Virus record (IMG/VR): IMGVR_UViG_3300017528_000567
Coordinates: 124,001-188,000 of that record
Reading direction: 5' to 3' (one strand)
Length of the DNA: 64,000 nt
Shown: positions 16,566 through 55,842 of the stretch, piece by piece
Layout of the letters: each line of letters opens with the position of its first letter
Numbering within the stretch: position 1 is the stretch's first letter
The notes under the pieces: generated by a model
Told to the model about the DNA's origin: nothing
Seen by the model: the letters and a program-made list of their open reading frames with translations, nothing else
Database searches by the model: none
Program-made: the position numbers and the translations under genes

Positions 16566-16814
16566 TTAGACGTGGCCGGCGGTCTCGTTGTACCGTTTTG
16601 CCAACTGGTTGCGCTCGCGGATCGCGGCGTTGATAGCGTTGATAAGCGCGTTTCGCCGCCCGATGCTCGTAGCGTGACCCTTTTGAAAGGTCAGCGTCTT
16701 GAGCTTACTATCAAGCGCCGCGATCTCAGCCTTCATTTCCAGGGTAGTCATCAAGGGCGGACGCTGCGCGTGTGCCCAACGCTGAAGAACCCTGCTCGCC
16801 AATGCCTCGCTCAT
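16566..16814 (-). CDS. Small coiled-coil protein with N-terminal RVLQRW tag
   Basis: Begins MSEALASRVLQRWAHA, followed by a heptad-like helix. Confidence 0.65.
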   Translation of the reverse strand: MSEALASRVLQRWAHAQRPPLMTTLEMKAEIAALDSKLKTLTFQKGHATSIGRRNALINAINAAIRERNQLAKRYNETAGHV

Positions 16815-16850
16815 GTATGAGCCAGCAAAGGCACAGATTATTGCGACCGC

Positions 16851-17183
16851 TTACTTGACCAAGACCCCAGTGTTTTCCTTGACCTGCCGGGCCAAGTCAT
16901 CCCAGAGCTGCACCATCCTGAAATCCTTCTCGGCGGTCACCTCCAGCCGAACACCGAAGTGTTTCTCGGTCCAATCCTGGATGGCCTCGATGGCGAGCTC
17001 ACGCTCCGTGTACGTGGAGGCTGCGCGGGCAGTGAAGATCTTCACCGTCTTACCGTCTGCGAGCCAAGTCTCGACCCGAGCCGCCATCAATGGAATGGGC
17101 TCGCCGATGTGCTTGGGGCCGCGCCACTCATCGTAGTACGCAAGGGTCCCGTCCAAGTCTACTGCATACCAACCGTTTGCCAT
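16851..17183 (-). CDS. HAD-superfamily phosphatase (polynucleotide kinase/phosphatase-like)
   Basis: AVDLDGTLA (motif I), IFTAR (motif II), LWDD (motif IV). Confidence 0.85.
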   Translation of the reverse strand: MANGWYAVDLDGTLAYYDEWRGPKHIGEPIPLMAARVETWLADGKTVKIFTARAASTYTERELAIEAIQDWTEKHFGVRLEVTAEKDFRMVQLWDDLARQVKENTGVLVK

Positions 17184-17192
17184 ACAGCGGCG

Positions 17193-17199
17193 CTACACC
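17193..17199 (-). promoter_or_regulatory. GGTGTAG element 9 nt upstream of the HAD gene ATG
   Basis: GGTGTAG-CGCCGCTGT-ATG. Confidence 0.55.
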
Positions 17200-17206
17200 A
17201 GAGCAC

Positions 17207-17584
17207 TCAGCCGCCAACGCTGAACTGGCAGAACCACTCGTTGCCGCGCTGTTGCACCCTCTTGCACGTGACATTGGTTGCGTCGAAGATCGCATCCTTG
17301 AGGAACTTCTCGTCGAACTTGCCCGTAGGGTCAATAATCGTCAAAGACCCGTCGATCATTGCTGAATCGCTACCCACGCGAAACTTCGAGATCTGCGACT
17401 TGTCGAGGTCCAACTCCAACCCAAAGTTGCTAAGTTGCTCCGCAGCAATGCTAAGCGTCACGCGTGCGGCCTTCCTAGCAGCCTTCTTGGCTGTCTCCTC
17501 CACCTTTTGAATGTATGACTCAAAGGTATCGATCAAGTCACGTTGACCGGCCTGGCGGCGCCGAAAGTCGTATTGCATACCCAC
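17207..17584 (-). CDS. Hypothetical protein with YDFR N-terminal motif
   Basis: Begins MGMQYDFRRRQAG. Confidence 0.6.
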   Translation of the reverse strand: MGMQYDFRRRQAGQRDLIDTFESYIQKVEETAKKAARKAARVTLSIAAEQLSNFGLELDLDKSQISKFRVGSDSAMIDGSLTIIDPTGKFDEKFLKDAIFDATNVTCKRVQQRGNEWFCQFSVGG

Positions 17585-17602
17585 GCCAAGCGATAAAAGC
17601 TT

Positions 17603-18376: not shown

Positions 18377-18385
18377 ATCAGCGGG

Positions 18386-18703
18386 CTATATGCCGTACCG
18401 ATCGAGAACCTTCGCCAACTCCTCCAACGCCTTAGCTGCCTGGTCGGCGCTCGCCTTGATTCGTGGAAACTGGTCGATTGTAACAACAACGGCCGCATCA
18501 CTACCGGAAGTATGCCAACGAATCATGCCGAGCTGCCCAGCGCGAGCCTCACCCTTTCCGGTTTTTTCGTCGTACTTGACGTGGTTCCAGTGGTCGTTCA
18601 TGAGCTCGTAGAACTCATCGCCGTCATGACCAGCAACCTTACTGCGAGCCGCTACCCGTTCAGCCCTAAGCGCCGCTTCAAATTCATCGCGTACATTCGC
18701 CAT
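18386..18703 (-). CDS. Small hypothetical protein with RVAAR tag
   Basis: Contains LRAERVAARSKVAG near the N-terminus. Confidence 0.65.
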   Translation of the reverse strand: MANVRDEFEAALRAERVAARSKVAGHDGDEFYELMNDHWNHVKYDEKTGKGEARAGQLGMIRWHTSGSDAAVVVTIDQFPRIKASADQAAKALEELAKVLDRYGI

Positions 18704-18742
18704 ACTTCACCCCAAGATAAGAAGTTCTGCATCCGCAGCCCC

Positions 18743-18780: not shown

Positions 18781-18813
18781 CAGGTTACGTCAAGTCATTT
18801 CAAGCTACTTAGA

Positions 18814-19695
18814 TCAGACGCGGGTGATGACCACGCGGGTCAGACCACGCGGGTTGAACGCACCGATGCCCAAGTTCTCAAAACATGAGAAACCAATCGT
18901 ACGAGCCTTCGGATCGTCTGCCGAAAGGACGGTGATCTCGGTACGAACCGGGATACGACCGAACTGCTCGGGCTCGCAGCACACGTATGTGAAGCCAGCG
19001 GGCACGAGACGTGACGTGATGATCTGAGCTCCCCAGAGAACGGCCTGGAGACCTGTCTTGAGCAACGTGGCCTGGCTCTCAATGTCCAGGATGTCGCGAC
19101 CGAACTTACGAATGTCGGCATAGTCGACCGCGTTCATGTAGATGCGGGCGACACGTAGGTCGTGACGCTCAATCTCAGCAAACGCATCAGCCAAAACAGA
19201 CGGGCTGATCGGGGCGACAACCGGAACGTCCGGGTTCGTCTGGCCGGGCAGCGTGTCGAAACCAGAGACAGCGATGCTGTCCATGATCGCAAACGTACGC
19301 TCGTCTTCCGCGGCCTGAATCTGTGCCTTCGCAAGATCCTGAGCACGCTCGATCAGATCGAAGCGACGCTCCTTGATTTGCGTGAGCGGGATCTCCGGGT
19401 TCGAGGCAATCTCGAACAGCGGGAAGATCACGCGCCGTGGCTTCTGAATCGCAAGGATGTTCTCGCCCTCTTCGCCGACAACGAACGCCGTAACATCCGG
19501 GTCCTTGTCGTAGATTGGGAGAGCGCCATCAGGCAGCTGCTCGACCAGGAAGGTCTTACGACCTACAGCCGAATAGTCGCGACGCAGACGCAGGGGCTGC
19601 ACCATCGAAGCGGCGAGCTTCTGGCGGCCTGCAGCGGTCTTAATGTACTCACTAATGACCTGCTGCTTGAGTTGATTAGAAACTTGGTGTGCCAT
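18814..19695 (-). CDS. Major capsid protein, HK97-like fold (293 aa)
   Basis: Follows the protease, scaffold and decoration genes and precedes a strong terminator; HK97-like pattern (FEIASNPEIP..IKERRFDLIERAQ; LWGAQIITSRLVP; FENLGIGAFNPRG). Confidence 0.85.
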   Translation of the reverse strand: MAHQVSNQLKQQVISEYIKTAAGRQKLAASMVQPLRLRRDYSAVGRKTFLVEQLPDGALPIYDKDPDVTAFVVGEEGENILAIQKPRRVIFPLFEIASNPEIPLTQIKERRFDLIERAQDLAKAQIQAAEDERTFAIMDSIAVSGFDTLPGQTNPDVPVVAPISPSVLADAFAEIERHDLRVARIYMNAVDYADIRKFGRDILDIESQATLLKTGLQAVLWGAQIITSRLVPAGFTYVCCEPEQFGRIPVRTEITVLSADDPKARTIGFSCFENLGIGAFNPRGLTRVVITRV

Positions 19696-20446: not shown

Positions 20447-21769
20447 TCACTTCAGGCCGAAGGCGTCACGGACATCCGGAGCCGACTGCCAGAGACTCGA
20501 CAACTTATCGACTACGGCGTTGTTACTAGCCGTCTTCGAAGTGCCGCCGCCTAGCTTGGACACGCCATCGCGGGGGCGGGTGCCAACGGTGCGAGTGCTC
20601 GCGGTACGACGCGAACCCTGCTTCTGTTGCGCCTGACCCTGGCCTTGACCCTGGTCCGACTCTTCTTCGTCGGCCTGCTCGTCCTGTGCGAACAGGGTGC
20701 GGAGGATCTCATCCTCGCCGGCAAGAACCACTTGATCCACGTCCATCGGCGCGGGCTCCATCTCGATATCGCCCTCTGCCATCGGGCCGCAAGACTCGTC
20801 CGCAAGCAGCTGCTCGAGCTCGTCATCATTGCCCACGGGGGCCTGTTGCTGTCCGAGGCCCTGCTGCTGGCCAAGACCTTGCTGCTGTCCGAGGCCCTGC
20901 TGCTGACCTACAGACTGTTGCTGTTGGCCCTGTTGCTGGCCTTGAGCCTGCTGAATCATCTGTTGCAGCTGCGACATCATCTGTTGCATCTGCGCTACCT
21001 GCTGCTGGTTCGCAGACTTGCTCGTGGGCCAGTTCTCATTGGACTTAGCGTTCTGATCGCCGCCATCGTCCTTCGACTGCTCCGAGCGCTTCTTCTTCGC
21101 CAAGAGTTTCCGAGCGGCAGCCTGCTTCTGCTGGCCGTCATCATCATCGTCGTCGTCGTCGTCGTCCTCGCCGCCCTGAGACTTCGCCTTCATCTTCTCG
21201 ATGTTCTCTTTGAACTGAGGGGGCACCTCACCGGCCTGCTTCTCCTGACCTTCGTCAGCATCGTCATCATCTTCGGCGAAGCCGTCATCATCATCGGCCT
21301 CCTCCTCGTCATCCGCCTCGGTCTGCTCAGCAGCCAACCGCTTGTGCGTATTGATGAGCTCCTGGTCCGGCACATACATGAGAGCGAACGCCTGGTCCTC
21401 GATTGCATCGATTCCCGCGACCTTGCCGCCCTTCAACATAAGCTTCGCAACCGCGACACAGAGCTCAGCCTTCTTCAGGCGAACTCGGTCAGAGGCAGTC
21501 TTCTCAGCGTGGTTAAACGTGTCTTTACGCATCTCCGGTAGTCCGATCTCATCGCGTGCAGTCTGGCCATCCGAGTACTCGGCTTCCCAAGTGTTGGGTG
21601 AATGAACATCTTCGGCGAAGTCAGACGGGTCGCCGATCACGTACTCGTCCATTCCAGGTTGAGGGTGATCTTGGTTCATCGAATAGATATCGCCCGCGAC
21701 TTCAGCTGCCTGCTTCTTGGCAGCCTGCCTCGCGATCTCTTGAAGATTCCAGGTTGAGCGTTCACGCAT
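20447..21769 (-). CDS. Capsid scaffolding protein
   Basis: Acidic, Gln-rich low-complexity protein between the protease and capsid genes; many KxA motifs. Confidence 0.7.
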   Translation of the reverse strand: MRERSTWNLQEIARQAAKKQAAEVAGDIYSMNQDHPQPGMDEYVIGDPSDFAEDVHSPNTWEAEYSDGQTARDEIGLPEMRKDTFNHAEKTASDRVRLKKAELCVAVAKLMLKGGKVAGIDAIEDQAFALMYVPDQELINTHKRLAAEQTEADDEEEADDDDGFAEDDDDADEGQEKQAGEVPPQFKENIEKMKAKSQGGEDDDDDDDDDDGQQKQAAARKLLAKKKRSEQSKDDGGDQNAKSNENWPTSKSANQQQVAQMQQMMSQLQQMIQQAQGQQQGQQQQSVGQQQGLGQQQGLGQQQGLGQQQAPVGNDDELEQLLADESCGPMAEGDIEMEPAPMDVDQVVLAGEDEILRTLFAQDEQADEEESDQGQGQGQAQQKQGSRRTASTRTVGTRPRDGVSKLGGGTSKTASNNAVVDKLSSLWQSAPDVRDAFGLK

Positions 21770-21817: not shown

Positions 21818-23383
21818 TCACGACCGACCTAAGGCGTAGAGTCTGCCCTTCTCAAGAAGCTTACTCGCCTCAGAGCCGGTCACTACCCGGCCAATTACCT
21901 GACGGCACGCCGCCAAGTAGGTCTCATCATCTTCATATGGAGCGGTACCGCCCACACTTAGTACCGTCCTATAAACTCTTGTTTCACCAGCCATTGACGA
22001 TTTCTTCGTCAAAACATCCAGCATGCGAGAAACCGCGAGGATCTCTCGGCCTGTTAGACCGGCTTGCCTCACTCGACGCCATCCACCATTCTTCTGGAGG
22101 ATCAGCCCTTGTAAGACCCGCTTGGCTTGAGCTTTTCCAACAAACGAAAGAACGATCCTAGCAATGCGGCGCCACTGAGGGTGCACTAGAGCCGAGCGGA
22201 TCAAGCTCTCATTCTGTTTGTTGTTGTCGACGACTTCACGAACCTCGTTCGGTCCGCCCTTGCTGATCTCTTCGCGAACATGCTCGATGGCCTTGTCCCG
22301 CAACGCAGTAGAGAGATCCTTGACCGCCTTGTTGATGGGGTCTTCATCTTCACCTCCGGGGGGAGCTGGCGCCGGTGCACCCTCCGCGGGAGCTTCCGCA
22401 GGAGCTTGACCCTGCTCGGGAGCGGCCTGCTCTGCGGGCGCTTGCTCTGCCGGTGCTTGTTGCTGTGCAGGGGCCTCTGTCTGCTGCTGTTGCCCTTGGC
22501 CAAACAGTGAGCGAGCGGCTTTCGCGACCCCTCCTGGGATCGGCGCCGGGGCGGCTTTCGAGAAAGCCATGTGGAGCTTGTTTTCAACCTGCGCGACTTC
22601 TTTGGCAGACAGCACCCCACGCAACACCGCACCCTTGAAGGCCGGGTTAGCTACCCACGAGGCCTCGATAAACCTAACCGACGTAGGGTCCGTGTGGTGC
22701 CCGCAGAGCTCGGCCACTTTTCGTGGGGTCGCCGATTCGTCCACGAACTGCTGACCCTTGAAATAGCGGATGCACGCACACAACTGCGTTTCGTCTTTGG
22801 CGACGTTGCCGCACTTCGTGCAGGTCGTTGAGCTCGTGGAGCAACCCATGGAGAGCGTCCCGAGCTGGCCAGACTTGATCGAGCGGATGAGCGCCGCGTG
22901 CTTCAAGTCGTTGGCGATCAGAATGTCGACGTAGACCGAATCCCCGATGTCACGAGCCGCCGCATCAATGATGCGTCCCTGAGAGAGCTCGGGGATCTGG
23001 ACGTGCTCGATGTACGACTGCGCCCCAACAAACGACTTGAACGATGACATGAGCAGCTTGCGCTCGAACGCATCGTTGTTGTTGTTGATAAACCGCTGCG
23101 TTGCGGGCGTGACGTAGTAGTCCTGAAAGGGCCGGTTAACCTCGAAGCCCTCGACAAAGTGACGTCCAACAGGGGCGCTCGCGTTGTCAACGTCAACGGA
23201 TGCGACGATCGTCGCGTGACTCAACATGTACCTGCTGGGGTCGTACTCCTGTAGGATGACCCGAGCGGTCCGCTTCTGAAAATCGAGCTCCGGCAAGATC
23301 GCTGTACGACGCAAAGCATCCCACTCGGCGAACTTGATTCCCGGCTTCTGGAGTTTTGCTTTAGCGAACTTGAGAAACGCCAA
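21818..23383 (-). CDS. Prohead (maturation) protease, HK97/assemblin-type, with Cys-rich insert
   Basis: YIEHVQ...GRIIDA (candidate His), GQLGTLSMGC (candidate Ser), RFIEASWVANPAF; CTKC..CAC insert; upstream of the scaffold. Confidence 0.8.
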   Translation of the reverse strand: MAFLKFAKAKLQKPGIKFAEWDALRRTAILPELDFQKRTARVILQEYDPSRYMLSHATIVASVDVDNASAPVGRHFVEGFEVNRPFQDYYVTPATQRFINNNNDAFERKLLMSSFKSFVGAQSYIEHVQIPELSQGRIIDAAARDIGDSVYVDILIANDLKHAALIRSIKSGQLGTLSMGCSTSSTTCTKCGNVAKDETQLCACIRYFKGQQFVDESATPRKVAELCGHHTDPTSVRFIEASWVANPAFKGAVLRGVLSAKEVAQVENKLHMAFSKAAPAPIPGGVAKAARSLFGQGQQQQTEAPAQQQAPAEQAPAEQAAPEQGQAPAEAPAEGAPAPAPPGGEDEDPINKAVKDLSTALRDKAIEHVREEISKGGPNEVREVVDNNKQNESLIRSALVHPQWRRIARIVLSFVGKAQAKRVLQGLILQKNGGWRRVRQAGLTGREILAVSRMLDVLTKKSSMAGETRVYRTVLSVGGTAPYEDDETYLAACRQVIGRVVTGSEASKLLEKGRLYALGRS

Positions 23384-24171: not shown

Positions 24172-27100
24172 TCACTTAGCTAGCGGGCGACCGGAAGTAG
24201 ACTTTCCAGTGTGGACCGCCGATGACTGGTCATCCTTGTAGGCCTTCATGTACGGCTCGTCAGCCTCGGTCTGAATCGGCTGCATTGGATTCTTGAACGC
24301 GTCCATGTACTTCTCATCGGAGTCACGCTGGAGCACCTGAGCCAGCTTCCCCCGACCGATCTCGCTCGCCTGGCGATTCAGCAGCGAATCAGTCCCGTAG
24401 GTAGCGGTTTCGAGGTCATCAGCGATCTTATCGATCGCGTTCACCAGATTCTTAGCCGCCGTGAAGTCCATCCCCCACTTGCTGTGGTTAGACTGGACAA
24501 CAGAGGCCACGCGGTCCAAGCGGGCCAACAGCTTGTCGGCTTGGGCGGTCTCGAGTTGAAGTTTGTTGTTCGGCATGGTGTTCCTCGCAGTTCGTGATCT
24601 AACCGTCAGTAAGGTCTCGTCCTCAGACACGCCCGCTAGGCGCGCCAAAAGCTTGTTGTAAACAGTCGGATGGATTGCGTGGTCGTAGTTCTCAGCGCGC
24701 AATGCGAGGTCCAGTGCGGCACGCAACTGGGTGTCGCGAACAACGCCATCGATCTTCGTCGACAACGCGGGCGTGGAGAGCCACTCGCGAGCTGCCTTTA
24801 GCAGTCGGGTATAGTCCGACGCAGCCAGGTCTCTAGCCTGTGGCTGCTCCCACCCGCGGTAAGGCTCAAACCCCTCGTGGCCTTTCGGATAGGGGGCAAC
24901 ACCCCAATAGACAGCTGATCGATCCATCGGACTAGTAGCGGAATAAAAGGAAAAGGTGTGCCCCGAGCTCCTGGCCGCTACGCGCAGAGCGATGCTCTGG
25001 TCCGAGGCGAACCGAGACATGAAGCTGTCCCAAACGGCTGATGAGGCGTCCGCCAACCACTTCGGGACCTTGGCCTTCCCGGTATACCTAGGCGGCTTGA
25101 TCGGTATCTGCGGGGCTATGATGTTCGACTGGAGTAGACGATCTTCGACCTTGAGAGGTCGCTTCCCAGGTTTGCCACCAGCCTTCTTCTTCGCTTTGTA
25201 TTCCTTGAGCTCGGCGTCGTATTCCTGGGTCGCCCGTTCCTTGTGCTTTTCGTAGCCCTTGGCGGCCTTCTCATACTGTTTCAGGTCTTTGTCGTACCGC
25301 CGACTGTCATCGTGATCGAACAACTCCTGCACGGCACTCAGCTTCTCCGGCCGGAGGCCTGCGAGCTGTTTCATCACACGGTCGCGAAATGTCCGGTGCG
25401 TATCCTGGACCGTTGTGCCCTGGGGATAGCGCTTGTCCTTTTCCTCCAGATAGGCGCTGGCCTCACGGATACCTTCCGCGATTTCTTTGGGGGACTGATG
25501 CTCGGAAATGTTCTTTCCGTCCGCCGAAGTCAGAAACAGCTTCCGGGCCTGACGATAGTCATTGGCCTGGCAATAACCGACGATCAGCTTCTGCATCGCC
25601 GGATCCTTGGTCGAGCTCAAGAGCTTCTGAACCTCCTGATCTGACACTGGCGGCACAGGCGTTCTTTTATCCAAGCCTGCCTTGAACAGGTCGGAGGCCT
25701 CTTGCGTCGCCCGCTGGAAACGATCAGTGGGCATCTCTGAAAAGCTAGACAGCGCGAAGTTAGACATCACGCTTGCGAGCTCCTTGGGAGTTCCGCGCTG
25801 CTGAAAGCTACCAGCCAGCGCGTCTTGAGCCGCCAGGCTCATCGCAACGCCTTGGACTTGATGCTTACGGTTAGCTCGCGCCTTCTCGACTGGGTCCGTA
25901 ATACTATCGAAGGGGACGGTGCTCCCATCGGCCAATTCGACCGTTGTGGGAGACGCCACCGCATTCGGATCAGTGGTGTAGAATGGCGCCGCCTGTTTCA
26001 GTAGAGATTGGATATCCTTGGGGGCCGGCGTCGCCCTCGCCACATTGTAGTCTTTGATGATCTGCTGTATCTCATCCGGGTGATAGCTCGGCTTGGAGAA
26101 CATCAGCTTTTTGGCGATGTCCATCGGAAACGTCTGCATTAGAAGGCGGTCTGCCGCCGCGACTTCAGAGTGTCGGACGGGGCGCTGCGGTTGTGATGGG
26201 TCAAACTTAGGCGGGGGTTCCTCCTCGCTCTGGCTCTTGCCCTTGCCTTTACCCTTGCCTTTACCCTTGCCTGCAGGTGGCTGACCCGCGGCGGGTGCAG
26301 CGGCGCCAGGTGCTGGCGGAGCTCCGGTTGCGGGTGGGGTCGGTTGAGCCGGTGCAGCAGGAGCTCCGGGGGCTGCTCCTGGTTGCGCTGGCGCTGCACC
26401 TGGGGCTGGCGCTGCACCCGGTTGTGCAGGGGCCGCTCCTGGTTGTGCTGGGGCTGCTCCTGGAGCGGGCGCCGCGCCTGGTTCTGCGGGCGGGGTACCT
26501 TCGGCGGCAGGGGCTGGCGGGGCTCCGGGGGCCGGGCCTTTAGGCTTTTTCTGTTTCGGCTTTTTCTGCGCAGCAGCTTCTGCTTGCTCTTTTGCGGCGA
26601 GAGCGGCTTTTGTCTCTGCCAGCTCCTTGGCGATCTGGTCATATTCCGCGAGCGCCTTGAGAGCCTCCTTGATGGCAGCTCTGTCCGCCTTTGCGCCCTC
26701 CGACTTCGGATCCTCTTTCAGCTCCTCCTTAATGCCTTTCAAACGCTCTTGGAGCTGAGCACGATCTCGGCTCGTATCAACCGGCTTGGCCTCCTGCTCT
26801 GGTTCCTTAGCACCAGGTTTCTTTGGGCCTTTCTTGGGCTTCGGTGCTTCGCCTTGAACGGCAAGAACCCGCGCGAGGTCCCCCATCGTCTTGACACCCT
26901 CGGGCGGGGTCTTGCCCTGCATGAACGCCTTAGCGCTATACCCGGGGTTATTCTTAGCGAACTGGGAACTGTCCGACTCGGGCTTCCGGAATGACTTTAG
27001 GAAGCTGTCGAACTTGGGATCGTCCTTCGCCAACTCTCGCAGCGCATCACGCGCCGCCATGTCCTTCTCGACATTCCCAGGGGCCGGCGCGTCGGACTGC

Positions 27101-27516
27101 GGGGCCTTCTTCTCTTCTGGCTTAGGCTTGCCCTTTGACTTGAACGTCTCCTCTGCGGAATCGTCCGCGAGCTCATATTTACCAGGCAGCTCCTTAAGTT
27201 TGTCTTCACTGATCTGACCAACCCAGCCAGTGGCTTTGGATCGGACTTTGACCTTCTTGGCTTCGGGCTTAGTAGCCTTGGTCCCCGGAGCCGCGGCCCA
27301 CCGGCGCAAAACCCTCGCCGCGACCGACCCCCCGATGTCTTTGAAGTTCTTAGAGAGGTCCTTATCCCTACCGGCTAGGTCAGGATCGTCGTCGACTTCC
27401 ACCCGCTCCCTACGTAGGTCATGCCGTGCCGGCTTAACCTTGGGGCTCGGGCGAACAAGCCTCTCGACTTCTTCATCCTCCCGCTCTCCGCGGCTTTTCG
27501 TAGCTTCGCGATCCAT
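24172..27516 (-). CDS. Large multi-segment head-associated protein (1114 aa)
   Basis: Between the portal and protease genes; Pro/Ala linker of PAQPGAA repeats; RVLRRW and RVAAR tags. Confidence 0.7.
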   Translation of the reverse strand: MDREATKSRGEREDEEVERLVRPSPKVKPARHDLRRERVEVDDDPDLAGRDKDLSKNFKDIGGSVAARVLRRWAAAPGTKATKPEAKKVKVRSKATGWVGQISEDKLKELPGKYELADDSAEETFKSKGKPKPEEKKAPQSDAPAPGNVEKDMAARDALRELAKDDPKFDSFLKSFRKPESDSSQFAKNNPGYSAKAFMQGKTPPEGVKTMGDLARVLAVQGEAPKPKKGPKKPGAKEPEQEAKPVDTSRDRAQLQERLKGIKEELKEDPKSEGAKADRAAIKEALKALAEYDQIAKELAETKAALAAKEQAEAAAQKKPKQKKPKGPAPGAPPAPAAEGTPPAEPGAAPAPGAAPAQPGAAPAQPGAAPAPGAAPAQPGAAPGAPAAPAQPTPPATGAPPAPGAAAPAAGQPPAGKGKGKGKGKGKSQSEEEPPPKFDPSQPQRPVRHSEVAAADRLLMQTFPMDIAKKLMFSKPSYHPDEIQQIIKDYNVARATPAPKDIQSLLKQAAPFYTTDPNAVASPTTVELADGSTVPFDSITDPVEKARANRKHQVQGVAMSLAAQDALAGSFQQRGTPKELASVMSNFALSSFSEMPTDRFQRATQEASDLFKAGLDKRTPVPPVSDQEVQKLLSSTKDPAMQKLIVGYCQANDYRQARKLFLTSADGKNISEHQSPKEIAEGIREASAYLEEKDKRYPQGTTVQDTHRTFRDRVMKQLAGLRPEKLSAVQELFDHDDSRRYDKDLKQYEKAAKGYEKHKERATQEYDAELKEYKAKKKAGGKPGKRPLKVEDRLLQSNIIAPQIPIKPPRYTGKAKVPKWLADASSAVWDSFMSRFASDQSIALRVAARSSGHTFSFYSATSPMDRSAVYWGVAPYPKGHEGFEPYRGWEQPQARDLAASDYTRLLKAAREWLSTPALSTKIDGVVRDTQLRAALDLALRAENYDHAIHPTVYNKLLARLAGVSEDETLLTVRSRTARNTMPNNKLQLETAQADKLLARLDRVASVVQSNHSKWGMDFTAAKNLVNAIDKIADDLETATYGTDSLLNRQASEIGRGKLAQVLQRDSDEKYMDAFKNPMQPIQTEADEPYMKAYKDDQSSAVHTGKSTSGRPLAK

Positions 27517-27542: not shown

Positions 27543-29318
27543 TCACCCAAAGCGGTCATCGGGGGGCGCCTCTTGCTCCACCTTCTTGAGGCCAAGAGTC
27601 TTGATCAGGCGATCCGTCACGTCAGTCTTGCCGATCAGTTCAGTCGATACCGCGCCGTAGATACCGCGCATCAGCTCGTTGAACAGAGCGTCGTTGACCG
27701 TGAACAGGTCGCGCTCCAACTTCACTCTGGTGTCATCGGGGTCGATGTTGAACATCTCCAGGATGAGCGAGATATCGATCGAGCCCTTGTTGTAGAGATT
27801 GAACAGGGCGTCGTACGTGTCCTGCGAATCGCGCAAAGGCAACCGGGTGAACGAGAGGCGCGGAAACAACACAACCTCCCCGCCCCACTGGTTCTTCTCA
27901 ACGAAACCCTTACGGCGAGCCACGGGCTTGAAAATGTGCTTCTCGACATATTCCTGCAGCATCTCGCGCAGGAACATGTACCGGGTGTTGATCACCTCCA
28001 GCTTGAGGCGATCTCCCGAGTACAGTTGCTCGCCGGAGAGCAAGCTCTCTGTAACGCCAAGCCCAGCGAACAGCTGCTTATCTGTGATCTCGTACTCGCT
28101 CGAGAGGTCCAGCAGCCGGTCCTTGGACCCCATTTCCTCCCAATGGACCTCGTAGTTCGCGACGATCGAGTAGTCCGGATCCACCAGCGACAGGTCGACC
28201 TGCTCGCGTAGATCCATCACGTCGAGCTCGGAGATTTTGTCACCCCAAACGATGCGCTTCGGTGTCATGGCGCGGGATGCGATCTGCGTCTGCGCTTGCC
28301 GCAACTTCTCGCGGTACATCAAAGTGCGCAGTACGCGATCGAGAATGCTCTGACCAAGGTCCTCACCCGCACCGCGGCGACCCGCCAAGTAATAGACGAA
28401 TGAGCCCTCATCCGCGTCGGTCCCCAGTGGGATGAGCTTGCCCTGCTCTAGGTGGTTGCGCACCTCTTCCGGGATCTCGCGAACCATCTCCTCCGCGAAG
28501 TCATCGCCGGCCTTGGCTTGCTCGATGAGCGCGCGGTCGCGGTCTGCCGGGATCAACTCGACCTTCATCTTGTCGGTGAACGAATAGGTGGTGACCTTCA
28601 CCTGGTCGATCGGCAAGACGATGATCCGGTCCCATCCTCGGTAGTATTTCTGATAGTACGCGAGCTCCTGGTCCTCTCGGTCGGGCCGCTCAACCCGAGT
28701 GACGTCATCTTCTTCGACCGCTTCGCCGTCCTCGGTGACCTTCGATTTTGTCCCAACCGACTTCGAGTCAAACCCGACGTCATCGGGAACATCCACGGTC
28801 GAGTCCTCTGCGAACGAGAACACCGACCCATCCAGCCAGTAGTGGTGAACCATCGTCACCAACCGCTGAAACAGCTTGATTCGGTCGCACATCTCTTGAA
28901 AGAACCAAAGGATGTAGTTGCCGTAGTCGTGCGCGTCCTTGAATCCTTCCGGAAAGGACGTTGGCTTGGGCGTAGCAAGTCGCACCTTGGACAGCGGGAG
29001 CTCGGTATGCAGGTCGATCGATTGCCCAACGATCGGGTCCGTGTTGTAAAAGTGCCGGTAGAGCTCGCGCTTCTCGCGCAGAGACTGCGGCAACTCCAGG
29101 AAGTCGGTTGAGAGCTGCGGCGAGAAGAACTGGCCAGCTGTGGCCAGCGACGTGTTCATCGAACCGCCATCATTGGCCTTCTTCAGTCGCCGGGCCTCTC
29201 GCTCCTTCTCAGTAAGCCCGTTGACCGGGCTCTTGGCCACGTACGGGCGGCTCTGAAGCTTCGTGGTCTGGGGTAGCTGTACCCCGCGTCTAACGTTGGT
29301 GAAATCTTTTGCCATCAC
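27543..29318 (-). CDS. Portal protein
   Basis: 591 aa downstream of the terminase; portal-like N-terminus (YRHFYNTDPIVGQSIDLHTELP) and GVTESLLSG segment. Confidence 0.8.
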   Translation of the reverse strand: MMAKDFTNVRRGVQLPQTTKLQSRPYVAKSPVNGLTEKEREARRLKKANDGGSMNTSLATAGQFFSPQLSTDFLELPQSLREKRELYRHFYNTDPIVGQSIDLHTELPLSKVRLATPKPTSFPEGFKDAHDYGNYILWFFQEMCDRIKLFQRLVTMVHHYWLDGSVFSFAEDSTVDVPDDVGFDSKSVGTKSKVTEDGEAVEEDDVTRVERPDREDQELAYYQKYYRGWDRIIVLPIDQVKVTTYSFTDKMKVELIPADRDRALIEQAKAGDDFAEEMVREIPEEVRNHLEQGKLIPLGTDADEGSFVYYLAGRRGAGEDLGQSILDRVLRTLMYREKLRQAQTQIASRAMTPKRIVWGDKISELDVMDLREQVDLSLVDPDYSIVANYEVHWEEMGSKDRLLDLSSEYEITDKQLFAGLGVTESLLSGEQLYSGDRLKLEVINTRYMFLREMLQEYVEKHIFKPVARRKGFVEKNQWGGEVVLFPRLSFTRLPLRDSQDTYDALFNLYNKGSIDISLILEMFNIDPDDTRVKLERDLFTVNDALFNELMRGIYGAVSTELIGKTDVTDRLIKTLGLKKVEQEAPPDDRFG

Positions 29319-29740
29319 TCAGCACCACTTGCGTCCCCGTCCACCACTGCTTGGATGACGCCATCCGTGAGGTCTGAGTCTTCTCCATACATATTGAGCA
29401 GAGACTCCACTGGAGTGGAGGCCACGGGGGCCTGCTTGAGAGGTGGTTTGACAATAGATTCTGCAGCTGCGGGTTCAGGAGTTAGGCCCTTGAGAATCCT
29501 GGCCCCCACCGACGCTCGTTTAATCCCTTGCCCCGCCATGCCCGCAAACCGAGACCATGTCGTCGCGAACCGCATGTAAATAGCCGTGTTGTCGTTGGCC
29601 GGAGCTCGGCGCACCCGCTGGTAAAGGCTCTGAGAGAGGCCGTGGATACGTGCCACGCGAGACTGCAGCTCCTGATGGAGGGTATTGATCTCCGCGACAA
29701 TGGCAGCGGGCTCCATGCGATCGGGCGGAGTCAGATTCAT
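29315..29740 (-). CDS. Hypothetical protein upstream of the portal gene
   Basis: Start moved to ATG 29740, which overlaps the upstream stop (ATGA). Confidence 0.65.
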   Translation of the reverse strand: MNLTPPDRMEPAAIVAEINTLHQELQSRVARIHGLSQSLYQRVRRAPANDNTAIYMRFATTWSRFAGMAGQGIKRASVGARILKGLTPEPAAAESIVKPPLKQAPVASTPVESLLNMYGEDSDLTDGVIQAVVDGDASGAE

Positions 29741-30306
29741 AGACTGGTCTGAATCCCTAGGAAGAATTGATTGATCGGAGCGGGCCGCTGGATCACAAAA
29801 CCGGTGAAGAAACACGGGGCAAATGGTAGTGCCGGAGCCATCGAAGCTTCATCCTCATTGGTCCAAAGTCCACGCCGCGAGAAAAAGAGCGGGTCCTTAG
29901 GGGTATACACCAATGGAACGTAGGGGCCGCCCGCAACCCTAGACGCGTATGTGTAGCGCTCGTAGCTCGAGGTTGACATGATGGCGTTGCCGGCCATCAT
30001 CACAGCGCTGCTGGGGTGCACAAGCTGAGACCTGGTGCTGCTTACGAATTGGTCTGCCGATTCATCGCTCCCCCACAGCATGAAGCCGCCGTAGAGCCCG
30101 GTCGAATAGCTCACCACAACGTCCTGCAGCGGTGAGTCGACCCACGTAACCCCCTGACCGCCGGCCCAACCGCCCTGCAGCATGGCTTCATCAACCGTGA
30201 CAACGTGAGAGTCCCCCTTGCCAAAGATGACGCAATCCCGCGAGCGGACAATGTCTAGCCCACGGAAGTCAATTTCGAATGATCCGACTGGAGGTGGAAA
30301 GGACAT
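29737..30306 (-). CDS. Decoration-like paralogue 3
   Basis: GWAGGQG..GGFMLWGSDE..YERYT..LFFSRRGLWTNEDE. Confidence 0.7.
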   Translation of the reverse strand: MSFPPPVGSFEIDFRGLDIVRSRDCVIFGKGDSHVVTVDEAMLQGGWAGGQGVTWVDSPLQDVVVSYSTGLYGGFMLWGSDESADQFVSSTRSQLVHPSSAVMMAGNAIMSTSSYERYTYASRVAGGPYVPLVYTPKDPLFFSRRGLWTNEDEASMAPALPFAPCFFTGFVIQRPAPINQFFLGIQTSL

Positions 30307-30821
30307 TAGAGGGCCGTCTGAACCATGAGTTGAAAGTTATTCTGACTTGAAGGGGCTTGAATGACCGAGCCGATTAGGAAGCCGTTTGAGCCTCGGGGAT
30401 CGCCAGAAACGCTCCACTCGTCCTCGGGTGTCCAAAGCCCCCGTAGGCTGAATCTGAGCCGAAGCCCTACAGGGTAGTCGTTTAGAACAAGGGGGCCGGT
30501 CAGCCTCGACTGCAGCGTGTACTTCTCATAGGAGACCGTCGAGATCACCCAAGTCCCAAAGCAACACACGCCAAATGTGTACTTGATCTGGTTCCCGGTA
30601 TAGGCGATGAACTGGTCTGCGGGCTCATCTGATCCCCACAGCAGAAAGCCGCCGTATGTCCCATCAGAGTAGGTGACGAGGAAGGTGTCGGAGCTCGACG
30701 CGGTCCACGTTGCACCCGAGCCCCCGGTCCAGCCATTGGTGACCATCGCTTGGTCGACCATCACCGGCACCGACAAATCTGTGACGAGCGCAATGCACTC
30801 TCGAGTGCGTGGCAAATCCAT
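30306..30821 (-). CDS. Decoration-like paralogue 2
   Basis: GWTGGSG..GGFLLWGSDE..YEKYT..LRFSLRGLWTPEDE..IGSVIQAP. Confidence 0.7.
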   Translation of the reverse strand: MDLPRTRECIALVTDLSVPVMVDQAMVTNGWTGGSGATWTASSSDTFLVTYSDGTYGGFLLWGSDEPADQFIAYTGNQIKYTFGVCCFGTWVISTVSYEKYTLQSRLTGPLVLNDYPVGLRLRFSLRGLWTPEDEWSVSGDPRGSNGFLIGSVIQAPSSQNNFQLMVQTAL

Positions 30822-30849
30822 CAGCCAGTCCTTTCCCCGGTGTCCATCA

Positions 30850-31368
30850 TCAGATGCTCACCTGTATTCCGAGGTGCCAATTGCGCTCTTCAATGGGTCT
30901 CTGTGTGACGAATGCAATGAAATAGCTATTAGGTCCCCTCGGGTCGCCCGAGAGGGTCCACTCGTCTTCCGTGGTAAAAAGGCCGGCCAAGCTAAAGACC
31001 AGCCGGTCACTTGCGTGATAGTCGATCGGCACAAGTGGCCCGCCGCCCGTGCGCGAGGCATAGGTGTACTTTTCGTAGTTCGCCGTGGAGATCGTCCAAC
31101 CGCCAGCACCAAGGACCACGAACTTGTAGGCCGGCTGGTTCCGGGTCATGGCCGTAAAATCGTCTGAAACCTCATCGGAGCCCCAGAGTGCGAAGCCCGC
31201 ATAGAGCCCGTCTGACTTCGTGACGATAAGCCGGTCTTCAGTAGTGTTAGCCCATTGGAAGCCTTGGCCGCCTTTCCACCCACTCACAGCGTCAGCCTCG
31301 GTCACGTCAACCGTTATGGTTGCCCCCTTGAAGAACGTGATCACGTCTCGAGTGCGAGGTATTTCCAT
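30850..31368 (-). CDS. Decoration-like paralogue 1
   Basis: GWKGGQG..AGFALWGSDE..YEKYT..LVFSLAGLFTTEDE. Confidence 0.7.
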   Translation of the reverse strand: MEIPRTRDVITFFKGATITVDVTEADAVSGWKGGQGFQWANTTEDRLIVTKSDGLYAGFALWGSDEVSDDFTAMTRNQPAYKFVVLGAGGWTISTANYEKYTYASRTGGGPLVPIDYHASDRLVFSLAGLFTTEDEWTLSGDPRGPNSYFIAFVTQRPIEERNWHLGIQVSI

Positions 31369-39954: not shown

Positions 39955-40581
39955 CTACAGACAGCGGTCGAGGCCGCGATTGCTCCACTGCGGAAGACTC
40001 ACGGCGCGTAGGATGTTGAACTTCTTTGATGAGATCGAGGTGAAGATCTTTTCGTACGGCCGAAAGAGCTCGTTGTGCGCCGCCGCGATCTTGAGCTTAC
40101 TGACCGCCTTGAAGAAGCGGTGCCGGACGCGCCCCTGGGTTAGCTGGAGGCTGTTGGCAACCTCCGACTGACAGGTGGTCTGCCACATGCCGACCAGGAT
40201 ATCGACGTCGATCTGCTCGAACAGCTCGCAGAGGTCTTCGCGCAGCTCCTCTTCCGTGACAGCGGGGATGGCCAGCAAGAACTTCAGCCGCTGGATCCCC
40301 CTGTCTAGGCGGTAGCTAATCGCCGCTTGCGTCACATCAAAGATCTCAGCGATGTCCGCTTGCCGCTTCTTGCACACATAGTACAGGTAGATCAAATCGG
40401 CTTCGCGCTCAGGGATCCGGTCCAACAGCGGAGCGATCCTTGTCTCATAGTCGCCGCTAGAGAACAACGCGGAGACATCCTCCGACTCGGGCGGCGCCTC
40501 GTCATCTAAGAGCACCGCGGGAGCCGCGAAGCGATTGGCCAACTCGGCGGGGTCGACAGGGATCACATAACCGTTGGACAT
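39955..40581 (-). CDS. Sigma70 region-4-like protein with two tandem HTH units
   Basis: LDRIPEREADLIYLYY..RQADIAEIFDVTQAAISYRL and CQSEVANSLQLTQGRVRHR; no region-2 motif seen; GAGGAGG upstream. Confidence 0.75.
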   Translation of the reverse strand: MSNGYVIPVDPAELANRFAAPAVLLDDEAPPESEDVSALFSSGDYETRIAPLLDRIPEREADLIYLYYVCKKRQADIAEIFDVTQAAISYRLDRGIQRLKFLLAIPAVTEEELREDLCELFEQIDVDILVGMWQTTCQSEVANSLQLTQGRVRHRFFKAVSKLKIAAAHNELFRPYEKIFTSISSKKFNILRAVSLPQWSNRGLDRCL

Positions 40582-52616: not shown

Positions 52617-52630
52617 TGGCTTCTATTTCC

Positions 52631-53272: not shown

Positions 53273-53319
53273 GATGAATGCGGGTCGAGAGCCGCAGCCC
53301 TCGACCCGCACCCCTCCCT

Positions 53320-54231
53320 TCAAACGCCTGACAGCATATCGTTGAAGTTGTCGGCAGAGGCATCAACACCGCCGCTGCCTTCATCACTCGAGCTACTACC
53401 GCCACCAATACCCAGCTTCTCTCGGAGCTGGTCTGTCGTCATCTCGCGAAACGGATTCAGCTTGTCGTACAGATTCAGAGCACCAGTCAAAACGGCAGCC
53501 TTCATCTTCTCGTTGCGCTGCCATGTCGCCGGACCAGCGGCTACCACTTTGACCCCCTGGAACTTCGGGTTGTCACAGGTGATCTTAACGTCCTGAGAGG
53601 CAAGGCTCAGTCCGTTGTCCCGCAGCCCTTCGTTGCACCCGTAAATCTCATCGTACGTCTTCCCACTGAAACGCCACGGCACAAGCTTCAACTTGGCAGT
53701 GTGGACTTGATTCGCGAGCGCCTCCTTGTTGATCGAGCCCTCGCTGTCCGTGGGATAGATGAGAAGCAGCGTCGTGAAGTATGACTTCACCGGGCCGATC
53801 TTTTTCCAGACCAGATCCGCGTCTGGTCCATCCTTGCCATACCGTGAAATCACGTAGCCCACGTCATCGTGAAAATGAGCCTTGAGCGACTTGAAGTGCG
53901 CGACCGTTGTGTCCAGCCGCTCGATAGCAGACAACTGATCTACCGACTTGCCCAAGTCCTGTGCACGCTTGGTTAGAGCCGCTTTTGCAACTGCGACGGT
54001 CTCCTCACGCGACAAGCGCTTACCGGCCTTACCGGCGTCCTTCATGGCCTTCTGAACCGCGTTGGCGTCGAGCGTGTACAGGTACACGAACGCCGCGCGA
54101 ATCATCTGCCCCTTGTTGCCGAACTTGAACCACTCTTGCCGGTCACGCCCGGCGTTCTTTTGATCGGGCTCAAGAGAGGCGTCGTCGTCGAAAGAGTAAT
54201 CTGTATCCAATTCCAGATCGTCGTCAGACAT
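53320..54231 (-). CDS. Probable single-stranded DNA-binding protein (gp32-like)
   Basis: Aromatic-rich core, Gly/Ser/acidic C-terminal tail ending DNFNDMLSGV, adjacent to recA and ruvC. Confidence 0.55.
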   Translation of the reverse strand: MSDDDLELDTDYSFDDDASLEPDQKNAGRDRQEWFKFGNKGQMIRAAFVYLYTLDANAVQKAMKDAGKAGKRLSREETVAVAKAALTKRAQDLGKSVDQLSAIERLDTTVAHFKSLKAHFHDDVGYVISRYGKDGPDADLVWKKIGPVKSYFTTLLLIYPTDSEGSINKEALANQVHTAKLKLVPWRFSGKTYDEIYGCNEGLRDNGLSLASQDVKITCDNPKFQGVKVVAAGPATWQRNEKMKAAVLTGALNLYDKLNPFREMTTDQLREKLGIGGGSSSSDEGSGGVDASADNFNDMLSGV

Positions 54232-54395
54232 ACTTCAGCTTCCTTATTGTTTCAGGCCGCCCCGACCACAAATGCCAGCTAGGCGGGAAGTCGGGAATCG
54301 GCAGGCTTTGGAGTTGTCAGTCCGGAAGATCCCAGTGAGGTCCCGGGAGCGTTAGTTGACTGCCAAGTGTCCTATGGAGAAATCACACAAGGCGA
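54232..54395 (-). promoter_or_regulatory. Structured 5' leader of the SSB-like gene
   Basis: Largest intergenic gap in the window; minus-strand pairings GGCAG/CUGCC, CAGUC/GACUG, CCGGGA/UUCCGG, CCCGAC/GUCGGG and GCCG/CGGC. Confidence 0.45.
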
Positions 54396-55148
54396 TTACA
54401 CATCCTTGAGTAGGTCCTCCCAATCCGCGTTCTCGACTGCCGTTGCCGTTCCAACCAACCGCCGCGGTACACCCTCACTGAGGAATCTTAGTGCGTCAGA
54501 TTCAGCTCCCTCTACACTGAGCTCAGCGGGCTGCGACGTGTTCTCAGAAGAAAGTTGATCTGAATTCTCGGCGGTGGGCGGGGGCTCCGACAACATCTGA
54601 GCGAGCTCCTCAGTGGTCATACCGCCGCCGTCATCTTCCCCGGGCCGCAGCGATGTAGTCCTCTCATCGCCGTAGAACGATCCGCTGCGTATCTCGGCGG
54701 TCATGAGCCGCTTCTGATCTCGAATCGCTGTCATCGTGGCGTGCAGTTCCTTGTTCCGGTAAGCAACCACTTTGTGCACAGCCTTCAGACTGTGCAGACG
54801 ACCACGAGCCTCAGTGAGCGCCGCACGTTGTTCTCGTAGACGCCAACCAACCGCCGCTTTACGATCCTCGATGGATGACCCGAGGTCCTTCACACTCTGG
54901 TCGTTGGCGAGAATGTCATCGTGCTCGAGCTCATAGGCAGCCTCCAAGCGCCTGACTTCCGAGCTCACAGTCAGGTGCTCGCGATCCAACTCATTGAGCA
55001 CCAGCCCCACACGATTCAGATAGTTCCGACAGGTGGCGATCAAGTCCTGGAAATATTGCGGACCCAACGAGCTCGGGTCCGACGCCAATTCAATCACGAG
55101 CCCATCCATCTCTTTGAAGATGGCGTCTATACGCTGATCGTTGAGCAT
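54396..55148 (-). CDS. Coiled-coil protein with acidic amphipathic tail
   Basis: 250 aa, helical; ends ENADWEDLLKDV. Confidence 0.7.
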   Translation of the reverse strand: MLNDQRIDAIFKEMDGLVIELASDPSSLGPQYFQDLIATCRNYLNRVGLVLNELDREHLTVSSEVRRLEAAYELEHDDILANDQSVKDLGSSIEDRKAAVGWRLREQRAALTEARGRLHSLKAVHKVVAYRNKELHATMTAIRDQKRLMTAEIRSGSFYGDERTTSLRPGEDDGGGMTTEELAQMLSEPPPTAENSDQLSSENTSQPAELSVEGAESDALRFLSEGVPRRLVGTATAVENADWEDLLKDV

Positions 55149-55156
55149 GCCCGGCC

Positions 55157-55163
55157 CTACACC
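55157..55163 (-). promoter_or_regulatory. GGTGTAG element 8 nt upstream of ATG 55148
   Basis: GGTGTAG-GGCCGGGC-ATG. Confidence 0.55.
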
Positions 55164-55203
55164 GCGAGGGGCACCGATAGTCCTTCAATATGCACGGGTG
55201 AGT

Positions 55204-55842
55204 ATGGAGTCTGAGAGTCGCGTGCTACGGCGGTTTAAGCGTGCCCAAGAGGAAGCGCTGGAAGAACTCGCCGACCACGTAGCAGACGAATTTCTGCAGG
55301 AGCTGAGTGGCTTGGGCATCTTCAGTGAGGACCGGGTTTCCACGGCACTCACTGTGAAGGGGCTCACCGCCGACAGCCTCAACTCCATCTCCGAGGGAAA
55401 GACCGCTGGCCCCGTGATCAAAGCTCTAGGAGGGCTCGTTCTACGCGGGGTCTGGTACGCCCTAAGCCACCCGTTCGTCATTCTCGGAAAGCTCATCAGC
55501 TCCGGGAAGTTCCGTGCAGAGATCAAGGGGGCCTTCAAGAAGGCACTCCACAGAGACCTCCGAGCAACGCGCCATCTTGGAAGCGTGGCCAGCCGCTGGG
55601 CGAACGGCGAAGCGATTCACCCCGAAGAGTTCAAGGCTGCCAAGCAACACCTGCTACGCATCCTCATCAAGATTGTGTTGATCTATTTTGCCGGCCCGGG
55701 GGTCGCCGGGGTCTTCTCGGGCGGAATTTGGAAAGCGGTCAGTGCCATAGGGTTCTCCGCTGAAGAAATCATCCTATTGCTGCTCGAGCGCCCTCTAAGT
55801 GCCGCCATGAAAAAGCTCATGAGCGGTCCCACTGCCGCCTAG
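55204..55842 (+). CDS. Lone plus-strand gene: RVLRRF-tagged protein with hydrophobic C-terminal helices
   Basis: Fills the gap between two minus-strand genes; begins MESESRVLRRFKRA; contains KTAG; hydrophobic LLRILIKIVLIYFAGPGVAGVFSGG. Confidence 0.7.
   Translation: MESESRVLRRFKRAQEEALEELADHVADEFLQELSGLGIFSEDRVSTALTVKGLTADSLNSISEGKTAGPVIKALGGLVLRGVWYALSHPFVILGKLISSGKFRAEIKGAFKKALHRDLRATRHLGSVASRWANGEAIHPEEFKAAKQHLLRILIKIVLIYFAGPGVAGVFSGGIWKAVSAIGFSAEEIILLLLERPLSAAMKKLMSGPTAA

Follow-up and report, generated by a model that had tools for sequence, protein, structure and literature searches.

A short basic peptide shared by unrelated head-module proteins of uncultured megaphages, and its possible role as a capsid address tag

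Results

We analysed a window of 64,000 nucleotides (IMG/VR record IMGVR_UViG_3300017528_000567, positions 124,001 to 188,000), part of a genome of at least 255 kb, that encodes 59 proteins (19,629 aa). The window includes a head-gene module on the minus strand. The portal protein (27543–29318, −) matches PHROG portal families (best E = 3.1e-28). The major capsid protein (18814–19695, −) matches PHROG 2522 (E = 1.3e-49) and is 47.7% identical to the major head protein of Tunturiibacter phage Tunturi_5 and 39% identical to gp27 of Bacillus phage G. Between these genes lies an acidic, Q-rich scaffold-like protein (20447–21769, −) with KTAS and RTAS sites; [KR]TA[SA] sites are conserved in its homologs.

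The head maturation protease (21818–23383, −) comprises an N-terminal protease domain, a low-complexity linker and a C-terminal domain. It was identified by PHROG head maturation protease hits and is homologous to Tunturi_5 gp331 and phage G gp19. Residues H56, S134 and H162 are invariant, and resemble the positions of the HCMV catalytic triad. The AlphaFold2 model has a pLDDT of 72.6; the top five Foldseek hits in the PDB are HCMV protease, and VZV protease is also among the best hits, although these matches are not significant (E = 0.065–0.23 and TM 0.23–0.31 for the top five). A profile search of the protease against PDB sequences returned nothing.

The initial annotation had noticed a shared RVxxR[FW]-like peptide at seven sites on otherwise unrelated proteins, often N-terminal or next to an x-x-A site. 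This observation holds: all seven sites are present where they had been placed. Three lie near the start of small minus-strand ORFs. RVAARF (34761–34778, −) occupies residues 9–14 of a 137-aa protein (34389–34802). RVLQRW (16776–16793, −) occupies residues 8–13 of an 82-aa basic ORF (16566–16814; pI 10.9) that was found only in the same or a near-identical phage. RVAARS (18641–18658, −) occupies residues 16–21 of a 105-aa ORF (18386–18703) just downstream of the major capsid gene. Three more lie within large proteins. A 1114-aa protein (24172–27516), encoded directly downstream of the portal gene, has RVLRRW at residues 68–73 (27298–27315, −) and RVAARS, preceded by RFAS, at residues 845–850 (24967–24984, −). 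A 637-aa protein (36796–38709) has RIAKRF at residues 275–280 (37870–37887, −), 7 residues after KTAS. The seventh, RVLRRF (55219–55236, +), lies 6 residues after the ATG at 55204 of the protein at 55141–55842, the only plus-strand gene, which is located in the replication module and has one hydrophobic, membrane-like segment at residues about 171–195.

The pattern was defined after inspection of the data, and the genome is GC-rich and rich in R, A and V, so we first asked whether chance or composition could explain it. The strict motif R[VI]xxR[FW] occurs 6 times in the 59 proteins against 0.48 expected, a count that 0 of 2000 shuffles reached; a looser pattern that allows S occurs 9 times against 1.05. 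In related loci the count is 82 against about 11, and 26 against 1.1 within the first 30 residues, although counts across homologous sites are not independent events. Ten same-composition sibling patterns (including reversed, other spacings, K for R, and L/M for V/I) are at 0.4–2.1 times expectation, compared with 7.8 for the tag. Moreover, a 485-kb related genome carries the motif at background rate (6 hits in 141,997 aa). A chance or compositional pattern, or a common helix in an Arg/Ala/Val-rich proteome, is contradicted by these controls and by the matrix and conservation data below, and we consider it all but excluded.

A position matrix trained only on other phages ranks exactly these seven sites at the top of the window, with five beyond the 1e-5 null quantile. 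The 137-aa protein tag scores 27.4 and the first tag of the 1114-aa protein 22.0. The tag of the 82-aa ORF scores 17.6 (null frequency about 1e-6) although this ORF has no homolog in the training set. The two S-variants are weaker: the second site in the 1114-aa protein scores 10.0 and that of the 105-aa ORF 8.1, which is marginal. The former is validated by homologs that have Y, F or H at the S position; the latter has no informative homologs and remains only a possible tag, although in related phages the same position holds other small ORFs with clear N-terminal tags. The sixth strict hit in the window (RVRHRFF, 39955–40581) sits in a conserved helix-turn-helix-like context and is not picked by the matrix; it is not a tag. 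Neither are the hits in terminase (RITDRF) and in a large insert in some protease genes (RVSKRF).

The motif is conserved at the peptide level. In the 137-aa family it is retained in about 30 homologs from IMG/VR loci, down to 35% identity, and 58 of 72 database representatives carry it, usually at residues 4–11. Codons vary synonymously and internal sites exist, which rules out a nucleotide-level element such as a promoter or translation signal at gene starts. In the 1114-aa family, NYK-x-IGGS-x2-3-RVxxR[FWY] is conserved across homologs at 30–70% identity, and sites homologous to the second tag read R-TAS...RVAAR[YFH] within an indel-rich linker. In the 637-aa family the flanks K[TQ]AS and ANSS-x-P...GPR are conserved; the tag itself is kept in closer relatives, whereas more distant homologs carry a tag at their N-terminus instead. 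The ortholog of the plus-strand protein in another locus (L071; 41% identity) has RVAARY-QRAS at residue 7. Some homologs (P0011, P0012 and L032) have tandem duplicated tags, as expected of a modular binding peptide.

The extended consensus, [LIV]-A-x-R-V-[ALV]-A-R-[FYW]-[LQK]-x-A, reads as an amphipathic helix; AlphaFold2 places a helix at residues 3–16 of the 137-aa protein, at low confidence (pLDDT 50.8). Neither this model nor Pfam, PHROGs or the ESM Atlas suggested a function for that protein.

At least 12 unrelated protein families in related phages carry the tag. Hidden paralogy of the carriers was rejected: pairwise BLAST of the six carriers in the window finds no significant similarity, and the short sub-significant matches include the tag segments themselves. 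Carriers are mostly basic (pI 9–11), and include small, fast-evolving ORFs that turn over between related phages, in variable islands next to the capsid and protease genes. By contrast, the capsid protein, portal, terminase, scaffold-like protein and protease all lack the tag.

The initial annotation had named equal abundance on non-virion proteins as an outcome that would count against a capsid role. The motif is concentrated in head-module loci, around the portal, protease, scaffold-like and major capsid genes, at 2.62 and 2.84 per 10,000 aa, against 0.44 in replication-module loci. The latter all come from one gene family, that of the protein at 55141–55842; apart from it there are no tags in about 45,000 aa of replication-module proteins from 16 loci, and no replication or recombination enzyme in the window carries one, although for this phage the scan covered only 64 kb of a genome of at least 255 kb. 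The tag is missing from the sister clade, where an RVAARF hit in the C-terminal domain of one protease (L041) aligns to an ordinary helix of that domain. It is also missing from Tunturi_5 and phage G, which share the capsid protein and protease but have no tags in 40 kb of structural genes, and from the 485-kb relative. The phage G proteomics paper gives no cleavage data. No cultured member of the tagged clade was found in the phage genome collection searched.

Tags are associated with a second motif. They start either 3–10 residues after a natural N-terminus (20 of 25 non-redundant N-terminal tags start at residues 4–11) or just downstream of [KR]-T-A-[SA] or GGS, which looks like a maturation-protease site. 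Internal tags are preceded by [KR][TSQ]A[SAR] or GGS in 17 of 31 cases against about 1 expected. N-terminal tags are usually followed by an x-x-A site, A-[SADQGP], in 17 of 25 cases against 2.5 expected, although this alanine could be part of the helix face (positions i, i+4, i+8) and not a cleavage site. [KR][TQ]AS is itself enriched in head proteins (11 against 0.67), and [KR]TA[SA] is conserved in the scaffold-like family even in the tag-less sister clade. We did not count the KTAA near the N-terminus of the capsid protein as a cleavage site, because it lies in a segment conserved even in phage G, where it reads differently.

The peptide does not correspond to two known arginine-containing motifs. 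The PP1-docking RVxF motif ([RK]-x0-1-[VI]-x-[FW]) is bound in extended form; here V and the aromatic residue are three residues apart, and R[VI].R[FWY] is not enriched (0.7 times expectation). Twin-arginine (Tat) signal peptides have consecutive arginines followed by a hydrophobic stretch; here the conserved arginines are four residues apart and the positions after the tag are polar (Q, A, D, P, G, K).

Discussion

We propose that the motif is the core of a 12–14-residue amphipathic helix that acts as a portable docking peptide. In this view it binds one common receptor in the assembling prohead and so recruits a changing set of accessory proteins into the capsid interior. The likely cargo is the 1114-aa and 637-aa proteins, the 137-aa protein and the small fast-evolving basic ORFs. 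The tag would work near an N-terminus, either natural or created when the head protease cuts at an upstream [KR]-T-A-[SA] or GGS site, and N-terminal tags would probably be trimmed afterwards at the x-x-A site that follows them. The receptor could be the acidic scaffold-like protein, the inner face of the capsid protein, the portal, or the C-terminal domain of the protease; presence and absence across loci gave no clean candidate. Our analysis establishes the motif, its conservation, its modular spread over unrelated families, its concentration in the head module, its restriction to one clade and its association with the second motif. Encapsidation, the receptor, the cleavage (including the protease's specificity for x-A|S-type sites), the sufficiency of the peptide for packaging and the order of events are inferred from sequence alone. 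We put the probability of this reading at roughly 0.55.

The initial annotation had suggested that the phage uses a basic amphipathic tag, analogous to but different from that of T4, to load diverse cargo into the prohead and then clips it off. This interpretation is partly supported. A tag that is conserved, and inferred to act, as a peptide, that sits mostly N-terminally on otherwise unrelated proteins and that is concentrated in the head module agrees with it, as does the x-x-A site that usually follows N-terminal tags. However, internal tags lie downstream of the candidate site, so that cleavage there would leave the tag near a new N-terminus and would not remove it, and one carrier lies outside the head module.

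The position of internal tags raises the possibility that the tag is a permanent anchor, kept in the mature virion to hold each protein or cleavage fragment on the capsid wall, the portal or the packaged DNA. The tag is basic, and large proteins carry one tag per segment. On the other hand, the strict conservation of V and of the aromatic residue points to a protein pocket, not DNA, and N-terminal tags are followed by a conserved break and site (for example A-D-Q-P in the 137-aa family), which suggests removal. We regard this alternative as unlikely. Equally unlikely, in our view, is that the helix is a docking handle (exosite) for the maturation protease, marking where processing should occur. 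The protease-site-like motifs on one side of the tag or the other, and the conserved extra C-terminal domain of the protease, which could bind peptides, are consistent with this idea. Yet most [KR]-T-A-S sites have no tag nearby, including those in the scaffold-like protein and in the 374-aa and 466-aa proteins; the tag-less sister clade keeps both those sites and the protease C-terminal domain; and several N-terminal tags have no recognisable site next to them.

A third alternative is that the tag binds a hub unrelated to the capsid, such as a chaperone, a membrane site or a compartment, and that the head-module bias is secondary. The membrane-like carrier among replication genes, and the location of the 137-aa carrier just upstream of a possible small terminase and the large terminase, could be read this way. 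The near absence of tags from replication-module proteins, and their clustering on proteins between the terminase gene and the genes after the capsid gene, make this very doubtful.

The closest parallel is the capsid targeting sequence of the phage T4 internal proteins IPI, IPII, IPIII and Alt. It too is a short N-terminal peptide shared by otherwise unrelated, fast-evolving and mostly basic proteins encoded with the head genes, and it lies next to a prohead-protease site, for which our tag has only putative, motif-based counterparts; its first 10 residues suffice for packaging and are then removed (PMC9026906). The distribution of our tag over small, fast-evolving ORFs, in variable islands next to the capsid and protease genes, mirrors this T4 pattern of diverse internal proteins that share a targeting sequence. 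There is no sequence resemblance: the tag described here is basic, with two Arg plus V and an aromatic residue, whereas T4 sites end in Glu, and Glu does not stand out at the positions after our tag. The tag also occurs internally in giant proteins, just after a putative cleavage site, and the capsid lineage is that of phage G and Tunturi_5 relatives. In phage P1, the first 30 residues of DarB are sufficient to send a protein into the capsid (PMC9024508). That signal is known for one protein family and is not a motif shared by many families.

In the giant phages SPN3US and phiKZ, many head and ejection proteins lose N-terminal propeptides to the prohead protease, and a targeting role has been proposed (PMC10052503). 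Those propeptides are 20–254 residues long, their cleavage motif ends in Glu, and no short sequence shared among them is reported in that paper; here a defined 6–12-residue motif is shared. In herpesviruses, an amphipathic capsid-binding helix is released by assemblin at an A|S site, and the protease is fused through a linker to a C-terminal domain. The herpesvirus helix is, however, C-terminal and on the scaffold only, and the structural match of our protease to HCMV and VZV proteases is not significant (E = 0.065, TM 0.25–0.30). Encapsulin cargo-loading peptides are short peptides on diverse cargo that dock onto the inside of an HK97-fold shell, as proposed here for the tag. They are usually C-terminal, have a different consensus, are not processed by a protease, and belong to cellular nanocompartments and not to virions.

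A bolder reading, which we offer tentatively as somewhat less likely than not, is that the tag and the [KR]-T-A-[SA] motif together form a sequence-readable address-and-release code for capsid cargo in this clade. If so, packaged and ejected proteins could be predicted from sequence alone, including hypervariable islands of small effectors, possibly anti-defence proteins, and a membrane-active protein encoded outside the head module. The tag would have arisen in one lineage on top of an older protease code shared with its tag-less sister clade.

How giant phages load dozens of accessory and ejected proteins into their heads is poorly understood, and in SPN3US and phiKZ the role of the propeptides is still open (PMC10052503). 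A short, well-defined tag shared by many families would give a way to list likely virion cargo in uncultured megaphages directly from sequence. It would also give a natural case, traceable by comparison with the tag-less sister clade, in which a targeting peptide appeared in one clade and spread to new genes, and a candidate handle for loading foreign proteins into very large capsids, as was done with the T4 and P1 signals.

Genomic setting

The window is part of an uncultured huge phage, with a GC content of about 0.59 and nearly all of its genes on the minus strand. It has no close DNA relative among deposited phage genomes. PHROG searches identified the genes for the portal (27543-29318), the head maturation protease (21818-23383), the major capsid protein (18814-19695) and the large terminase (31647-33734). 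To the right of 40.6 kb lie replication and recombination genes, encoding a 5'-3' exonuclease, a clamp-loader subunit, a Mre11-like phosphoesterase, RecA, a RecD2-like helicase, an NAD ligase and ribonucleotide reductase.

The portal retrieved 56 related IMG/VR loci, from contigs of up to 529 kb, and the window matches IMG/VR contigs of 255 kb and 175 kb at 100% portal identity. By capsid protein, the nearest cultured phages are Tunturiibacter phage Tunturi_5 (47.7%) and Bacillus phage G (39%). The capsid protein is far more conserved across the clade (70-99% identity) than the portal (45-96%) or any other head protein. Three tandem paralogous genes (29737-31368; 189, 171 and 172 aa) lie between terminase and portal; they are present in most loci of the tag-bearing clade and absent from its sister clade.

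A recurrent peptide motif

The initial annotation had described a shared basic tag at seven sites on otherwise unrelated proteins, and this observation holds: all seven sites are where it had placed them. The strict pattern R[VI]xxR[FW] occurs six times in 59 proteins against 0.48 expected from residue shuffles, and none of 2000 shuffles reached six. In the related loci, after removal of identical proteins, R[VI]xxR[FWY] occurs 82 times against about 11 expected, and within the first 30 residues it occurs 26 times against 1.1.

Because the pattern was defined after the fact, we ran three further controls. First, ten sibling patterns of the same composition (reversed order, other spacings, swapped positions, K for R, L/M for V/I, aliphatic for aromatic, E for R) lie at 0.4-2.1 times expectation, against 7.8 for the tag. 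Second, a position matrix built only from other phages ranks exactly the same seven sites at the top of the window, and five of these are beyond the 1e-5 null quantile, where 0.19 are expected per proteome. An 82-aa ORF has no homolog in the training set and still scores at a null frequency near 1e-6; the orthologs of the other strong sites were in the training set. Third, the complete genome of the 485-kb relative LR745208, whose capsid protein is 85% identical to that of the window, shows six hits in 141,997 aa, which is the background rate; this phage has almost no detectable homologs of the tagged proteins.

One strict hit in the window is not a tag. It is accounted for by a 208-aa protein (39955-40581) with a conserved 'LTQGRVRHRFFKAV' segment that resembles a sigma-factor or helix-turn-helix recognition helix.

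Conservation of the tag

The motif is kept in homologs while the codons change synonymously (CGC/CGT/CGG/AGG/AGA for Arg and all four Val codons), and selection therefore acts on the peptide. In the family of the 137-aa protein, RVAARF or a one-residue variant sits 4-11 residues from the start in about 30 IMG/VR homologs down to 35% identity. It is also present in 58 of 72 representatives from a collection of 5.8 billion proteins, the remainder being near variants or truncated gene calls. Some homologs carry two tags in tandem. Within this family a duplicated or partly duplicated tag, or an insertion right after it, is seen in the members labelled P0011 and P0012 and at positions 3804-4232 and 3122-3610 of loci L032 and L036, respectively.

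Both sites in the 1114-aa protein (24172-27516) are conserved inside indel-rich linkers. The first reads NYK-x-IGGS-x2-3-RVxxR[FWY]. The second reads R-TAS...RVAAR[YFH], so that the RVAARS found there in the window is a weakened copy of a genuine site. A long P/A/G/Q-rich low-complexity stretch followed by a (GK)n run (residues about 320-430 of the same protein) is not conserved in homologs. In the 637-aa family, close relatives keep the internal tag after K[TQ]AS, whereas distant members carry a tag at their N-terminus instead. The RVAARS of the 105-aa ORF could not be validated.

A further carrier (55141-55842) is the only convincing plus-strand gene in the window. It is wedged between a RecD2-like helicase gene and a 250-aa gene, and it encodes an N-terminal tag and one hydrophobic segment. 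It was found in only one other locus (L071), where the ortholog, at 41% identity, starts with RVAARY-QRAS.

Distribution across families and loci

Clustering of the carriers gives at least 12 unrelated families. These include several small ORFs (65-218 aa) next to the capsid and protease genes in other phages, each of which begins M-x3-8-RVxxR[FY]. The carriers in the window show no significant similarity to one another, and the short sub-significant BLAST matches between them include the tag segments themselves.

The extended consensus is [LIV]-A-x-R-V-[ALV]-A-R-[FYW]-[LQK]-x-A, which places the hydrophobic residues on one face of a helix, flanked by the two arginines. AlphaFold2 draws a helix over the tag of the 137-aa protein and then a break, but at low confidence.

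Tag density is 2.62 and 2.84 per 10,000 aa in the two sets of head-module loci. It is 0.44 in 16 replication-module loci, where the only hits are the orthologs of the plus-strand gene. Capsid protein, portal, terminase, scaffold-like protein and protease do not carry the tag. The tag is present in most loci whose portal is at least 52% identical to that of the window, and it is absent from nearly all loci of the 45-48% sister clade. It is also absent from 40 kb of structural genes in Tunturi_5 and in phage G. It is therefore a lineage-specific addition.

A companion motif and the putative processing site

A second motif, [KR]-[TQ]-A-S, is strongly enriched in head-module proteins (13979-38709), at 11 occurrences against 0.67 expected. 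Enrichment is only mild elsewhere, and there it falls in tail-like proteins (3307-12610), with KTAS in 3307-6522 and RTAS-GV-RTAS in 10700-12610. A 466-aa protein (13979-15379) ends in three near-identical repeats of about 40 aa (SASDEKESRFEEGKPADPT...KFK), each starting at a K-S-A-S site. The [KR]-[TQ]-A-S sites are conserved in the acidic, Q-rich scaffold-like protein, including in the tag-less sister clade. Moreover, a K-A-A-R site closes the protease domain just before its linker. The motif looks like the recognition site of the maturation protease.

The protease (21818-23383) has an N-terminal catalytic domain, an A/P/Q/E-rich linker and a conserved C-terminal domain of about 180 aa. Its protease domain is homologous to Tunturi_5 gp331 and phage G gp19, and has invariant H56, S134 and H162; Tunturi_5 gp331 (287 aa) lacks the C-terminal extension. 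The predicted structure (pLDDT 72.6) finds HCMV and VZV proteases as the best PDB matches, but without significance. The layout recalls the herpesvirus protease-scaffold fusion, yet this resemblance, like that to herpesvirus x-A|S sites, is a lead and not a result. In several related phages (L007/L008 15949-18711; also loci L034, L040, L047, L051 and L056) the protease genes are 900-1200 aa long because of a large insertion inside the catalytic domain, which could be an intein or a homing-endonuclease element.

The two motifs are related in position. Among non-redundant instances, 17 of 25 N-terminal tags are followed by A-[SADQGP] three to five residues after the aromatic residue, against 2.5 expected. 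Of 31 internal tags, 17 are preceded within 14 residues by [KR][TSQ]A[SAR] or GGS, against about 1 expected. Homologous sites are counted more than once, so these figures overstate the number of independent events. The regularity is that a tag is always close to an N-terminus, either the natural one or one that the protease would create. A rival reading of the tag is that it serves as a protease exosite.

Discussion

The pattern is what phage T4 shows for its internal proteins: a short conserved N-terminal peptide on diverse, fast-evolving, mostly basic proteins that are encoded with the head genes, and lying next to a protease site. In T4 the first ten residues suffice for packaging (PMC9026906), and P1 DarB has a comparable 30-residue signal (PMC9024508). 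Most carriers here are basic (pI 9-11). We therefore favour a capsid-addressing peptide that binds a shared receptor in the prohead. The very acidic scaffold-like protein is an obvious candidate partner for a basic helix, but presence and absence across loci did not single out a partner.

The initial annotation had proposed that the tag loads diverse cargo into the prohead and is then clipped off, and this interpretation is supported only in part. The site after N-terminal tags suggests trimming. However, internal tags would be exposed, not removed, by cleavage at the upstream site, and the Ala after the tag also fits the helix face; a retained anchor is among the rival readings. The carrier in the replication module, with its hydrophobic segment, is either a packaged membrane-active protein or a sign that the partner of the tag is not strictly a capsid component, and the remaining rival is a hub outside the capsid. 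What the sequences themselves establish is the motif, its conservation as a peptide, its spread over unrelated families, its concentration in the head module of one clade and its association with the second motif; all functional steps, from receptor binding and entry into the capsid to cleavage, are inferred.

Targeting propeptides are already described for T4 and P1, as are processed propeptides for phiKZ-like phages, whose role is still debated (PMC10052503). We found no description of the present tag in the papers searched. New here are the sequence, its sharp definition, its inferred use at both natural and protease-generated N-termini, its pairing with an A-S-type site code, and its presence in a clade of uncultured megaphages related to phage G.
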